Shown one piece after another: positions 40,096 to 45,094 of a stretch of 64,000 nucleotides of DNA. Source of the DNA: Geosiphon pyriformis uo1 (lineage: Eukaryota; Fungi; Glomeromycota); assembly GCA_016748015.1 (NCBI GenBank), contig JAAOMT010000128.1:1247538-1311537 (forward strand), read 5' to 3'. The translations under genes were made by a program, and so were the position numbers. Each line of letters starts with the position of its first letter. Within the stretch, counting starts at the first letter, position 1. Below the pieces are notes generated by a model, which did no database searches, was not told the origin of the DNA, and saw nothing but the letters and a program-made list of their open reading frames with translations.

Positions 40096-41235
40096 TTAGA
40101 TCCAAACCACCACATTATCCATTTCGCCATATCCATTCTCAATCCATCGCTTTTTTTCCTCCTCAAAAAACTTTTTTATCTCCTGCTTGCTATACCTCAA
40201 CGAAAAATGTACCAATATAAAAATTGTACCAGGGAAATGTTGCACCACATATTTTAACTCATGCCACCTTGTATGCTTTGTACGCTCAGCATTCTCTCTA
40301 TGTTCATCCTCTAGGAAAGTGCACTCCGTAATCACTATTGGCATGTTTTTCCATTGCCGTTTTTGGAGTGAGGACTCTGATCCTGAATTCTCCTTAGAAT
40401 GATCTTTAGGTGTATCAACTAAATTAGTGTTTTTAGATGACCTCTCATCAATTATTGATTTATCAACTTCTTGGTCCGAAGGAAAATCTACTTCGAAAAT
40501 ACTTGCAGTTGTATCAAGACAATAAGCAAATAAAGGGAACAAATACTCCTCATCAATAATGTGGTGATTTTTTTTAAGATCAGATATTTCTTTACCAGTT
40601 AGATTTGCGTATTTGGGGTTTAACCGTTTCCGTTTAGAATGGATCAAGTATCCGACACATGGAATTGAATGGTCCAAGCCCAATACGTGTACTTCATATC
40701 CCTCCTTAAAATCACCGTCATTTTTCCCCTTTTCCGATTGGACTTGTTTACTCGTAATACCATTTGCCCTAATGTTAATCTTATCTCCATCATTAACTCC
40801 CAAGTATATACATCTCTCATTATCTTCAATAATTCGTCCGCACCAGGACAACGCTTGTTCTGTTTTAAGATACTGTTCCATCAACACGCGGGCTTTCTCG
40901 GGCAATACCAAAGTGGGAGGAGAATGACGTGATAAGTATTTCGTGATCAAACTACAATGATCACTGTGTGTATGAGTGATGAATATGTGTGCCGGGATTG
41001 TGTTGTGAACTTTTAACCCACTATCAAAAAGAAATTTTAATTCTGGAATGTAGAAAGCGGTTTCACTTGCTGCACGGGATGCGCCAATCAGAGTTAATTT
41101 AGGCAATGAGATATTGTTTAGAGAAACAGCGGGGAAAGACCATTTTAGAATTTGAGTGGCGGCTGATAGTGTGTATAGATCAACCGGTTCAAGTATCGAT
41201 GAAGATTTATCTGAAGATATTAGTGATGTTGTCAT
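40096..41235 (-). CDS. Short-form, TM-type tRNase Z-like metallo-beta-lactamase-fold nuclease, intronless
   Basis: GASRAASETAFYIPEL..FDSG, ITHTHSDH (HxHxDH), HSIPCVGY, short arm KRLNPKYANLTGKEISDLK, AYCLDT, ITECTFL, HTRW, LVHFSLRY. Confidence 0.85.
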   Translation of the reverse strand: MTTSLISSDKSSSILEPVDLYTLSAATQILKWSFPAVSLNNISLPKLTLIGASRAASETAFYIPELKFLFDSGLKVHNTIPAHIFITHTHSDHCSLITKYLSRHSPPTLVLPEKARVLMEQYLKTEQALSWCGRIIEDNERCIYLGVNDGDKINIRANGITSKQVQSEKGKNDGDFKEGYEVHVLGLDHSIPCVGYLIHSKRKRLNPKYANLTGKEISDLKKNHHIIDEEYLFPLFAYCLDTTASIFEVDFPSDQEVDKSIIDERSSKNTNLVDTPKDHSKENSGSESSLQKRQWKNMPIVITECTFLEDEHRENAERTKHTRWHELKYVVQHFPGTIFILVHFSLRYSKQEIKKFFEEEKKRWIENGYGEMDNVVVWI

Positions 41236-42115
41236 TTGAGTTTTCTAATGATTAAAGGTGATTGTTGCCAATTTAACTTCCTTTGATATTAAAGATTCAA
41301 ATTTATTAATTAATTAATTAAATTCAAATAAAAGATTGAACCACAATTTAAATACTTTTTTAATATAACTGCGTGCAATTAACATAGATTTGTGATTATA
41401 AAGGCCAACTTTACCATTTCGTGACCAGGGGATTGTGTGTACATGATGTACAAAATGAACATTGTTCATGCTTAATTTAAGAGTCTTTACGTTTTTTACA
41501 CTCCAGTCATAGTTTTTTTAACTACGCCAAAGCAGCATAAAAATTATAAATTCGTAGAACCGAAAAAATCTTGGCACATTTAGAAAATTAAGGAAATGAT
41601 TAGAAATTTCAGTACTGCGCTAAATGCTCGAATATTTTGGAAATTTCAAAATAGAATTTTTCACCTTTACCTGATGAAAAAATGAAATAAATGATTTTTA
41701 CTGTCAGAATTTCTAATCTTGATAAAATTATGAAATTTTTTTTTAATCACCTTGTCTTAAACTTAAGCTCGTTTCTTAGCTGGAAATTTCTTTTAAAGAA
41801 ATTACCATGAAAAATAAAAAAATTCCAGGGTGGAAAAACTGGGAATTGGGTAATAGGAGAAAAAAGATAATAAAAAATTGGTATAAGATTGATGATTAAT
41901 GGTTTTAATTGTAATTTTTACTTAAAAACAAATATTGCAATTTCTATTCATTTTTAAATTATATAAAATTTTTAAATAAGATTAAAAAATTAAATTTATT
42001 TCATATTATAAGCAACGAGTATAACAATAAATAATTGTACATTCTTTAAATTATTTAATATATAATTAATATAATTAAATTATTAAAATCTTATGGCTAA
42101 TAATAATAAATAATA

Positions 42116-43229
42116 CGACAGAGTGAAATCTGAGATAACCAATAGTAAAATCTGCGCGTTATGTAAAACCTGCAATAAATAGACATTTTTTAAGAGCAAT
42201 GGCACCTTTTGAGGGCAGACCCAATTGAAAGTACTATAAAGTCGACCAAACTAAGTGGCACAACTTTGAATGGAAAATTCAAACGAGTAATACTGTTATT
42301 ACTGAGGTCCTTCTTCAGTACATATAACGGTCAGTTTTTATTGCAAAAAACATAAATCTTTCCATAGATGACAAAATTTATTGTATAACCACTTTTGAGC
42401 AGAGGACGCGAACTTCCAATTGCCCTTGCCCTTGCCCTTGCTTTGTAGATTTTTTTGCAACCCATTGTATTGATACCAGCAAGAATTCTTAATATTTTCG
42501 AAACGAACATCGGCAATATGATGGATGCCATTACAAAAAGAAACTCCCATGAGGTGATATCTATATTAAAAATTAATAAATAAATACAATAAGTGATAAA
42601 CTTAATTCAAATTTACCTTTGTTTTGTAATTTGATTTCCTTTAGGAAAATTGATTTCTTTCAGTAAATTTTTGTTCTGAAGAGATGTCTTTTCATTAATA
42701 GTGCTAATTCCCGTAACATTGATGGCAAGGATTAGAGGCAGTTGCTGGTCGATTTGTCTTTTTGATACGGTATCACCTGTGCATTGGTAAAAATACCTAA
42801 GAAAAGGTTAGAATGCAAAGCGAAAATAGAGGAAAAAATATAGACACTTTACTCAAGCTTTCCAGTCTCCAATGATACGCATTTTTCAGTCATATAAGCA
42901 TTTGTGGGAACGTTTTTTGGAGCCTCTCTGTCTGTCGATTTGAATTCTAATCTGCACGCAATAACATAAGGATTTTGCTAGTGTTCAAGGCAAGACTCGA
43001 AATAATCGTTTCCTGATAATACCAGAACCTGCGATTTTCTACAAATTAAATTATGTGCATTAATATAAATATATCGAACGAACATGACGATAGACTGTTT
43101 TTCATATTTATCGCAGATTTCACAGGTTTTTACCCTATTGCAGATTTTACCCAATCTATTGCAGGTTTTACATTACGTGACTGATCATCGCAGATTTTAC
43201 TATTGGTTATCTCAGATTTCACCCTGTCG
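42116..43229. mobile_element. Non-autonomous TIR DNA transposon (1.1 kb)
   Basis: TIR CGACAG(A/G)GTGAAATCTGAGATAACCAATAGTAAAATCTGCG at both ends (41/42 identical), extended after an indel. Subterminal AAA(T/C)CTG repeats. TA (or TAA) TSD inside a (TAA)n run. Confidence 0.9.
42331..43038 (-). pseudogene. Spliced C-terminal fragment of a USP/C19-like cysteine protease inside the TIR element
   Basis: Exons ~43038-42853, 42796-42617 and 42560-42331 give ..ACRL..YQCTGD..QLPLILAINV..EINFP..RYHLMGVSFCNGIHHIADV..WYQYNGL..GYTINFVIYGK. One stop and one frameshift. Confidence 0.65.
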
Positions 43230-43651
43230 TATAATAATAATAATAATAATAATTTATTTGGTAATTTAATATTAAAAGCTAGTCAAAGATGATAAGTGTT
43301 TTAACCCATTTATAAAAATCAGTAAAATCTTCAATCCAAGTTGAACGGTTCAAGTTTCATGTTTACCCTATTAATTATAATAATTAATCCAAGGATGAGG
43401 CTTGTCTAAAAACACATGCTTTATGAAGCCAATTTGGATTGAAAATAAACAAATTCTAGTTTACAAATGGTGTTAAACTCTGATCAGAATGTCTTTTTAA
43501 GATTGATATCAGAGTAAACTAATAATAATTGCCAGCTATAGAGTCCTTCTAGTTTCTCAAAATTAGAGTTTTAGTTAATTGATCCAAGCTTGCAATTTTT
43601 CGAATTGTATAATTGCTGATTAGCAGAAGAAAACTAAGCAATGGTATAAGG

Positions 43652-45094
43652 CTATTCACTCAAATCACTGTCATAACAAGGATCAACAAGCCAGGATTTG
43701 ATCAAGGCTCCGCTCTGGCGATCAATGGCAGGGGTATTTTTATCGCCGCCCTCTTTAGATTCCGATTCAAGATCTGCGTTGTTACTAACAAGTTCTTTAG
43801 TTTCCGTATTTAAATCGACAATATTTGGACCACCACGTCTTCTTGCAGCTTCGAGAGAATCGTTGGAAACAATATTAAAAAAGTTATTATCAACAATGTA
43901 ACGCAGGCTTTGTAAAAGGATGTTGCGCTCCTTCTTGATATCTTTATCAAGTAGCATTTTTAATAGATTTCCAGAGCGTGGGACTGGTAGATTCATATTA
44001 GGTGAACTTTGCTGATAATCAGGATTGGTCGATTTTACAGTAAGCCGATGACTATATGAGCAAGCATCTCCTCTGAAGCAATCGCCAGTTCGAAAGTATC
44101 GGCAAATTTTCTTATATTTAGTTCGAGATATGGAAGGCGATGAATTCTCTTCGACTTTTGTCTTATCAAGAGTCATATTTCTTGCCAATTCAGTCCTCAT
44201 CAAACTCTCTGTACTAATAGGCGCTGCAGCTTCAGCCGCTGCCAAAATGTCTGTCGGGGATGTATTCAAAGTAGACAAATTATCATGTTGATTGAATTTC
44301 AATTTCTTTCCAAAATAACCCGATCTGTCTTTTCTATGATAATCTCTAGGTCTTTTATTTAATCTATTATCAGATTTAGAAATGACCTCACCACGGGCAA
44401 TTCGTGCTTCCTCCGCCTTACGCTTTTTTTCTATATTTGCATCAGTTGGATAATTCTTCTTCCTTTCGGCAATCCATTCTTGAATTTCTTCAGGGCTCTC
44501 AAGCTTAATTTTTATTATCGGTGATATTGATGGTTCTTCATATCCGTATCTTTTTGGGTATACAGTTTTGTGGTGTCCAATCAATGGAGCAAATGCCTGG
44601 TCTCGATGCACAAACTTAGGGTAGTGGTGAACACGTGGATCTGATGCTTTATAATAATGATTTGGTCCTTTTTTGTAATTGTTTGCATGATTTATTAGTT
44701 CATTTCCAGGCGATCTATTGTGGGGGTCACGCCCTAAAGCCTTAGGGGATTCATTTGCTTCAGAACTTCCTTTTGTTTTTAGTTTAGGTGTCGATCTTAG
44801 AGCAGTTAATGCTGCCTCTGCAGCCACAGCACCGCGAGCTATTGATTGGTTATAAGCAAGAGAATATTCCGAAAATGGTCCAGGTAGTCTCGTTTGAAAG
44901 GGGGGAGGGAACCTTGGTGGTATACACCTGTTTTGCTCGTAAGAGGGAGCGGGGTAGGTCGGCAAGGAACTATTATGATTCAAGTTGGAGGAAGTAGAAG
45001 CAAATGGTTGAGTGGGATTTGGCGGGGTACCTGGAATATACCCTGTGCGATTAGTGCTAGAAACATATGCAGCAGAAAAATTGTTCTGCTTCAT
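43652..45094 (-). CDS. RSA1: Box C/D snoRNP assembly factor Rsa1/NUFIP1-like protein with CCCH finger
   Basis: IKLESPEEIQEWIAERKKNYPT (NUFIP1 motif), CRYFRTGDCFRGDACSYSH, LLKMLL..ERNILLQSLRYIVDNNFF. Confidence 0.88.
   Translation of the reverse strand: MKQNNFSAAYVSSTNRTGYIPGTPPNPTQPFASTSSNLNHNSSLPTYPAPSYEQNRCIPPRFPPPFQTRLPGPFSEYSLAYNQSIARGAVAAEAALTALRSTPKLKTKGSSEANESPKALGRDPHNRSPGNELINHANNYKKGPNHYYKASDPRVHHYPKFVHRDQAFAPLIGHHKTVYPKRYGYEEPSISPIIKIKLESPEEIQEWIAERKKNYPTDANIEKKRKAEEARIARGEVISKSDNRLNKRPRDYHRKDRSGYFGKKLKFNQHDNLSTLNTSPTDILAAAEAAAPISTESLMRTELARNMTLDKTKVEENSSPSISRTKYKKICRYFRTGDCFRGDACSYSHRLTVKSTNPDYQQSSPNMNLPVPRSGNLLKMLLDKDIKKERNILLQSLRYIVDNNFFNIVSNDSLEAARRRGGPNIVDLNTETKELVSNNADLESESKEGGDKNTPAIDRQSGALIKSWLVDPCYDSDLSE

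Follow-up and report, generated by a model that had tools for sequence, protein, structure and literature searches.

A dead Mutator-like element of Geosiphon pyriformis points to a transposase family with a diverged, probably USP-like C-terminal domain

Introduction

A short DNA transposon in the genome of Geosiphon pyriformis raises the question of how a spliced gene fragment resembling a USP-type (C19) deubiquitinase came to lie between its terminal inverted repeats (TIRs), and of what kind of gene it once formed a part. The element lies in a 64-kb stretch of DNA, the whole of which was analyzed and is referred to below as the window; L, C and P numbers are our labels for loci, contigs and proteins. 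The original prediction, made from the sequence of the window, took the element for a deletion derivative of an autonomous transposon and the deubiquitinase fragment for its cargo. On one side of the element is a host gene for a NUFIP1 and CCCH zinc-finger protein (window 43652–45094, minus strand; PF10453, E 2.5e-16), and on the other an open frame with a weak metallo-beta-lactamase match (window 40096–41235, minus strand).

Results

The boundaries and internal features of the element are collected in Table 1. The earlier bounds, 42114–43231, are those of the element plus the flanking TA on each side, and the TIRs do begin with CGACAG as had been described. The inverted-repeat arms (42110–42156 and 43189–43235) are 47 nt long and 96% complementary when the flanking ATAATA is counted, and 41 nt long without it; a second inverted block of 24 nt lies just inside the TIR. 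Subterminal repeats had been thought to be richer at the right end, which the counts of five GCAGRTTTYAC repeats on the right and three on the left bear out. With one mismatch allowed, the window contains 11 such repeats where 4.4 are expected, and eight of the 11 fall in the element ends; we infer that the transposase probably binds there. A search of the 128-Mb genome (792 contigs) with the element gave 119 DNA matches, so that a chance structure can be dismissed, and the 30-nt terminus was counted 22 times, against none in a reversed control.

Table 1. Features of the transposon in the window, ordered by position.
Feature	Position in window	Strand	Details
Whole non-autonomous element	42116–43229	.	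1114 bp, CGACAG...CTGTCG
Left TIR	42116–42156	+	3' end of the element relative to its gene; pair 96% complementary
Three GCAGRTTTYAC subterminal repeats	42123–42173	-	Inward-pointing
Last exon remnant	42338–42560	-	YHLMGVSFCNGIHHIADV...WYQYNG
Intron, 56 nt	42561–42616	-	GTAAAT...TAG; public gene models such as P0049 splice here
Middle exon	42617–42796	-	...SKRQIDQQLPLILAINVTG...EINFP..., still open
Intron, 56 nt	42797–42852	-	GTAAAG...TAG; homologue proteins contiguous across the join
First retained exon	42853–43038	-	...NDYFESCLEH*QNPYVIAC...SLETGKLE
3' part of upstream intron, retained	43039–43077	-	
Deletion junction or filler, 41 nt	43078–43118	-	~3.7 kb of the parent absent here
Five GCAGRTTTYAC subterminal repeats	43113–43222	+	Inward-pointing
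Right TIR	43189–43229	-	5' end of the element relative to its gene

The flanks of the insertion are A/T-only and TAA-like, in agreement with the earlier description of a (TAA)n run, and TA and TAA had been the candidates for the target-site duplication (TSD). Comparison of seven two-ended copies supported neither. In these copies, the sequence of the left flank returns in the right flank in a 10-nt register, every best-scoring offset pair sums to 10, and duplications of TA or TAA, which alone fail to explain this pattern, were rejected. Some flank repeats are longer than TA or TAA, for example TATTAAGA in L016 and TATTATAAT in L017, and the copies invariably have A beside the left end and T beside the right end. 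The flanks are best read as a duplication of 8 bp plus the invariant A/T or as one of 9 bp, with edges blurred by the A/T-only targets; given the 10-nt register and the invariant bases, the TSD is most likely ~8–9 bp. Six of the seven insertion sites at L001, L004, L010, L016, L017, L019 and L027 were A/T-only, L004 having CG, and the examined sites were mostly ATA/TAT repeats with a near-palindromic TAT....ATA context.

The target site also bears on the class of the element. The longer flank repeats and their register speak against a MITE of the Tc1/mariner-Stowaway or PIF/Harbinger type, even though the TA found at both ends of nearly all copies and the TAA-run site would suit one, and the long copies described below encode a DDE domain of the Mutator-like (MULE) type. 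We therefore consider an origin as such a MITE very improbable.

The gene fragment within the element consists of three minus-strand exon remnants, and each of the two introns between them measures exactly 56 nt. The introns had been read correctly: both have canonical ends, and the public gene models of sister copies splice identically. The middle exon is the counterpart of the USP "LPxxLxIHLKRF" and "FP" blocks, and the last exon covers the region that is aligned with the His and Asp boxes of USPs. Everything upstream of the "YFESCLEHW" block is missing from the window copy, and the absent part of the parent includes the transposase core and the Cys box, neither of which had been seen in the window in the first place.

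The retained exons are themselves decayed. The first has an in-frame TAG at 42978–42980, where the long copy has TGG (Trp). The last has a +1 frameshift at an A-run near 42450, a GGCAAG hexamer expansion and a D>N change in the Asp box, and its ancestral stop is gone (TAA>TAT). The USP-type motifs listed in the original prediction are all present, but the terminal "Y..F.IY" is not in the frame of "WYQYNG", owing to the 1-nt insertion near 42450. With the Cys box gone, an in-frame stop, a frameshift and the D>N change, the window copy is dead and itself functionless. It is ~9% divergent from the copy on contig C667, with a roughly balanced substitution spectrum.

A genome-wide search for longer copies and their transposase, suggested at the outset, found copies of ~4.85 kb with a MULE-type transposase. 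Several copies run more than 2 kb past the point where the window copy ceases to match, and the joined stretches on contigs C667, C666, C789, C589 and C400 have ~4.75 kb in common. The best long copy is that on C667 (L032:5090–9970), with a recognisable left TIR and a truncated right TIR. The first ~964 bp of the window element match it at 91%. Window positions 42960–43077 correspond to L032:6100–6217 at 97% and the ~85 bp at 43119–43203 to the last 74 bases of the long copy (L032:9897–9970), so that ~3.7 kb are missing between the two. These matches confirm that the window element arose by deletion from a longer, autonomous-type element. The same deletion junction is found in at least three further copies (at L004, L007/L013 and L002), which indicates that the deleted form itself transposed. 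The full-length element has a candidate Cys box and the window copy does not. All long Geosiphon copies that we read contain stops or frameshifts, and function can therefore be argued from homologues only.

A second and commoner deletion form is 1.47 kb long, has 163-nt TIRs at 99% and is present in at least 10 copies (L010:823–2289 and ~10 similar loci, L011–L019). It retains 620 bp at the 5' end of the element and 610 bp at the 3' end, including the last two USP-like exons, and its copies are publicly annotated as hypothetical proteins, for example P0049 and P0052. The NCBI protein G9A89_014268 of Geosiphon pyriformis is the gene model of a sister copy.

Hypermutated long copies (L034/L040, C789:6681–11480, and L037, C589:3811–8600) were compared with L032:5081–9975. 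Between C667 and C789, 703 of the 811 differences are C>T or G>A and 21 are the reverse, and the GC content drops from 32.5% in C667 to 16.8% in C789. This excess suggests that what appeared as a "78% identity subfamily" is largely the same element after RIP-like C-to-T mutation and not an old lineage. Two candidate observations on the long copies were discarded. A "1335-aa open frame" beside an element fragment at L031 (C470:3800–7700) proved to be a ~3.9-kb run of N, and a stop seemingly common to two exon pieces is private to C667 (TAA, with TTA elsewhere).

The transposase of the long copies is of the MULE type. A 117-residue open frame at L032:8508–8858 matches PF21056, the ZSWIM1-3 RNaseH-like domain, at E 5.8e-5 and 23.5 bits; the homologues P0058 and P0057 reach 30.0 and 31.8 bits, respectively, against a Pfam cut-off of 27.2. 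Matches to PF10551 (MULE) are weak. A CPC...HDC motif of SWIM-like form is present and gives no Pfam SWIM match, and the sources themselves name homologues "SWIM-type domain-containing" and several of them "MULE transposase" or "SWIM-type".

In three gene models from Gigaspora, P0053 (798 aa), P0058 and P0059, the transposase and the C-terminal domain stand in one protein. The order in all three is unbroken and consists of the MULE domain, the CPC...HDC motif, a basic stretch and the C-terminal domain, as read from automatic gene predictions and not from transcripts. Judged by these unbroken models, what had been called cargo in the window is the 3' end of a transposase gene, and the USP-like part appears to be the C-terminal domain of the MULE transposase reading frame, fused to it in frame. 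Two features separate the SWIM-like motif from the USP-like domain, namely the basic stretch, KRGPKNKRK, and a beta-rich segment that is conserved (YYKAQIAEIIGDGKIIVDITFEDGN...); they are located at L032:6840–7100 on the minus strand and at residues ~440–520 of P0053. The segment looks like a small Tudor- or chromo-type barrel; it has no Pfam match.

A search with the Cys-box piece returned 22 proteins among 1.84 billion representatives, and further homologue searches returned 34 and 46 proteins. The homologues were found only in Glomeromycotina, namely Gigaspora rosea, G. margarita, Racocetra, Cetraspora, Dentiscutata, Ambispora gerdemannii and Geosiphon. None of the public gene models contains the complete C-terminal domain.

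The fragment in the window could also stem from a one-off capture in the manner of Pack-MULEs, with a fragment of a host USP gene carried as a passive passenger. Capture of host fragments by MULEs is described in the discussion section of PMC8647823, and the window fragment has introns and no start, as a captured piece might. The parent gene that such a capture implies was looked for genome-wide and not found. The genome matches of exons 2 and 3 are element copies only, where the original prediction had named a match to a single host gene, with other TIR copies lacking the peptide, as the result that would speak for a capture. A six-frame scan of the whole genome with PF00443 recovered ~12 host USP genes, which are unrelated, and no element copy. 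The domain is complete in the long copies and lies in frame with the transposase there, in the Gigaspora gene models and also in a partial model from Ambispora (P0062), and an internal deletion accounts for the fragment in the window. We rejected the capture of a host gene and give it hardly any credence.

The remaining question is whether the C-terminal domain of the transposase is related to USPs. Conventional searches gave no support: the Pfam profiles UCH and UCH_1 found nothing in any exon or in ~25 homologues, even at E 10, and phmmer and profile searches against PDB sequences gave no match. For a comparison of alignments, we combined public gene-model proteins with single-exon translations into a family alignment of 49 rows (A4) and assembled an alignment of 30 fungal USPs, including two host USP reading frames, as a Doa4/USP8-like comparison set (A3). 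Two USP proteins labelled Homo sapiens were excluded from every alignment. Exons were searched singly, and whole-domain tests used the public gene-model proteins.

With hhalign, A4 and A3 aligned at a score of 41.4 and E 1.2e-4, over 93 columns at ~25% identity and with a reported probability of only 55%. The aligned part is the C-terminal half, the portion kept in the window copy, and it pairs five blocks: LPLILvINv of the family with LPxILlIHLKRF of the USPs, FP with FP, RYxLxGVS with YDLYAVS, HHiA with GHYTA, and WYQYDG with WxxFDD. The motifs for which USP-type similarity had been claimed from the window sequence are thus aligned in the order given there. The controls scored far lower: reversed alignments gave 14.1 and 15.1, 60 column shuffles a mean of 16.4 and a maximum of 24.6, and 60 block shuffles a maximum of 19.7. 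Subsampled alignments gave 26.9–36.8 in the same region. A greedy extension was colinear over the whole domain and placed the family Cys on the catalytic Cys of USPs. The N-terminal half with the Cys box, aligned alone with USPs, did no better than shuffles, and an hhalign comparison of the family with host USPs taken one at a time did not reach significance, the best local match there already being the LPxxL block.

The candidate triad is conserved at Cys in 26 of 30 rows, at His in 27 of 30 and at Asp in 21 of 25. The candidate His and Asp lie inside the significant hhalign alignment, and the Cys is aligned only in the greedy extension; in the window copy, the Cys is absent and Asn stands in place of Asp. 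VTD domains of Helentrons, which are proven deubiquitinases, have an invariant Asp-x-His as their hallmark (PMC9741609). We rejected a VTD identity for the present domain because Asp-x-His is not conserved, the residues two before either His being variable.

Structure comparisons rested on an ESM Atlas model of the homologue P0025 (pTM 0.71). Of the ten nearest structure clusters in the list, five include PF00443 UCH, and the three that are USP-only (rows 1, 2 and 5) match the model with TM 0.53–0.63 over 204–215 residues. Among 30 named feature neighbours, 15 fall under UCH-only family sets, and Peptidase_C70 and C28 are among the others. The structural neighbours also include clusters of fungal protein-kinase and UCH fusions and a vertebrate C14orf28 cluster without a Pfam family. 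AlphaFold2 models of P0031 and P0029, built with family alignments, reached a pLDDT of 53–54, too poor for a test of the fold, and for these low-confidence models Foldseek and VIA-align gave nothing beyond generic helical matches.

Given this mixed evidence, the domain might be a lineage-specific appendage of the transposase that is unrelated to USPs and resembles them by convergence or by chance in a generic papain-like or alpha/beta layout. Such an origin would agree with the absence of Pfam and PDB sequence matches, the low confidence of the AlphaFold models, the Cys-box half without signal and the presence of Peptidase_C70 and C28 among the ESM feature neighbours; it is opposed by an hhalign score that greatly exceeds all controls, with the blocks in the expected register, by motifs that are colinear across the whole domain, and by the dominance of UCH clusters among the Atlas structure neighbours, at TM ~0.6. 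We regard an unrelated appendage as unlikely and consider it very likely that the C-terminal domain has a USP fold.

Discussion

We conclude that the feature in the window is probably a dead and non-autonomous element that arose by internal deletion from a ~4.85-kb MULE DNA transposon of Geosiphon pyriformis whose transposase has a diverged USP-like C-terminus. The parent would encode one multi-exon protein in which an N-terminal region precedes an RNase-H-like DDE domain of the MULE/ZSWIM1-3 type, followed by a SWIM-like CxC motif, then a basic stretch and finally the C-terminal domain. The latter, of ~300 residues, would adopt a very diverged USP-like fold (clan CA, C19-like) with a conserved Cys...His...Asp set. 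A deletion would then have taken out ~3.7 kb and spared the last three exons of the USP-like domain together with both ends, that is, the TIRs and the subterminal repeats as presumed transposase-binding sites. As at least four copies have the same junction, the resulting 1.1-kb form may have been mobilised in trans, and insertions would have been directed to A/T-only, microsatellite-like sites with a duplication of ~8–9 bp.

What the domain does in intact members is a more tentative matter. The domain is predicted to be, or to have been, an active deubiquitinase, and we infer a role for it in transposition. It is possible, albeit somewhat doubtful, that intact members are MULE transposases with an active, very diverged USP-type deubiquitinase as an integral domain, whose targets during transposition would be ubiquitinated chromatin or the transposase itself.

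The family resembles other MULEs: a MULE/ZSWIM-type RNase-H-like DDE domain is followed by a SWIM-like motif, the TIRs are longish (41–163 nt here) and accompanied by subterminal repeats, the target duplication is apparently of several bp, and derivatives with internal deletions abound. TSDs of the Mutator/MULE superfamily are 8–11 bp long, usually 9. The present family differs in its USP-like C-terminal domain and in a duplication that is apparently 8–9 bp with an invariant A/T beside the ends. Its preference for A/T sites recalls the TA-microsatellite targeting of the MuTAnT MULEs of Medicago (PMC4486113).

With KI-MULEs and other TIR transposons carrying ULP1 (peptidase C48), the family shares the stable association of a DDE transposon with a cysteine protease of the clan-CA type that belongs to the ubiquitin or a ubiquitin-like system. 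The putative protease here differs in being USP/C19-like, with Cys...His...Asp and an inserted finger-like region, and not ULP1/C48. In KI-MULEs, moreover, the ULP is a separate gene. ULP1 is known in MULE and CACTA elements, and OTU in Helitron-like elements.

The original prediction had not taken USP-type cargo as typical of DNA transposons, but subgroups of the Helitron-like HLE2 elements stably carry Pfam UCH domains (PMC11417382). Like the present family, Helitron-like elements with OTU, VTD or UCH are DNA transposons that encode deubiquitinase-type domains; they differ in being rolling-circle RepHel elements and not DDE/TIR elements, and their UCH is recognisable by Pfam whereas the domain of the Geosiphon family is not. 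Cellular USPs (PF00443) have in common with the family the order of blocks and the candidate catalytic residues, with the C-terminal half aligned at the E-value given above and a model TM of ~0.6. In contrast to them, the family is below all Pfam thresholds, has its ~25% identity over only 93 columns, has a His box that reads HH and not GHY, forms a fusion with a transposase and is confined to Glomeromycotina. A literature search for the combination of a MULE transposase with USP/C19 found no report, and the USP-like C-terminal domain is unnamed in public annotation, with no database annotating it.

The object in the window is an ordinary dead, non-autonomous transposon, and the novelty lies in the architecture of its family, which is a variation on a known theme. 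Several classes of transposons have independently gained proteases of the ubiquitin system, and the combination of a MULE with a USP-like domain adds an independent case from an ancient fungal lineage; if the reading is true, this would be the first DDE/TIR transposase known to be fused to a USP. The domain is compact, and its candidate triad is conserved across Gigasporaceae, Ambispora and Geosiphon. For the annotation of these genomes, the public "hypothetical protein" genes of Geosiphon and Gigaspora that belong to the family are transposon remnants and should be masked.
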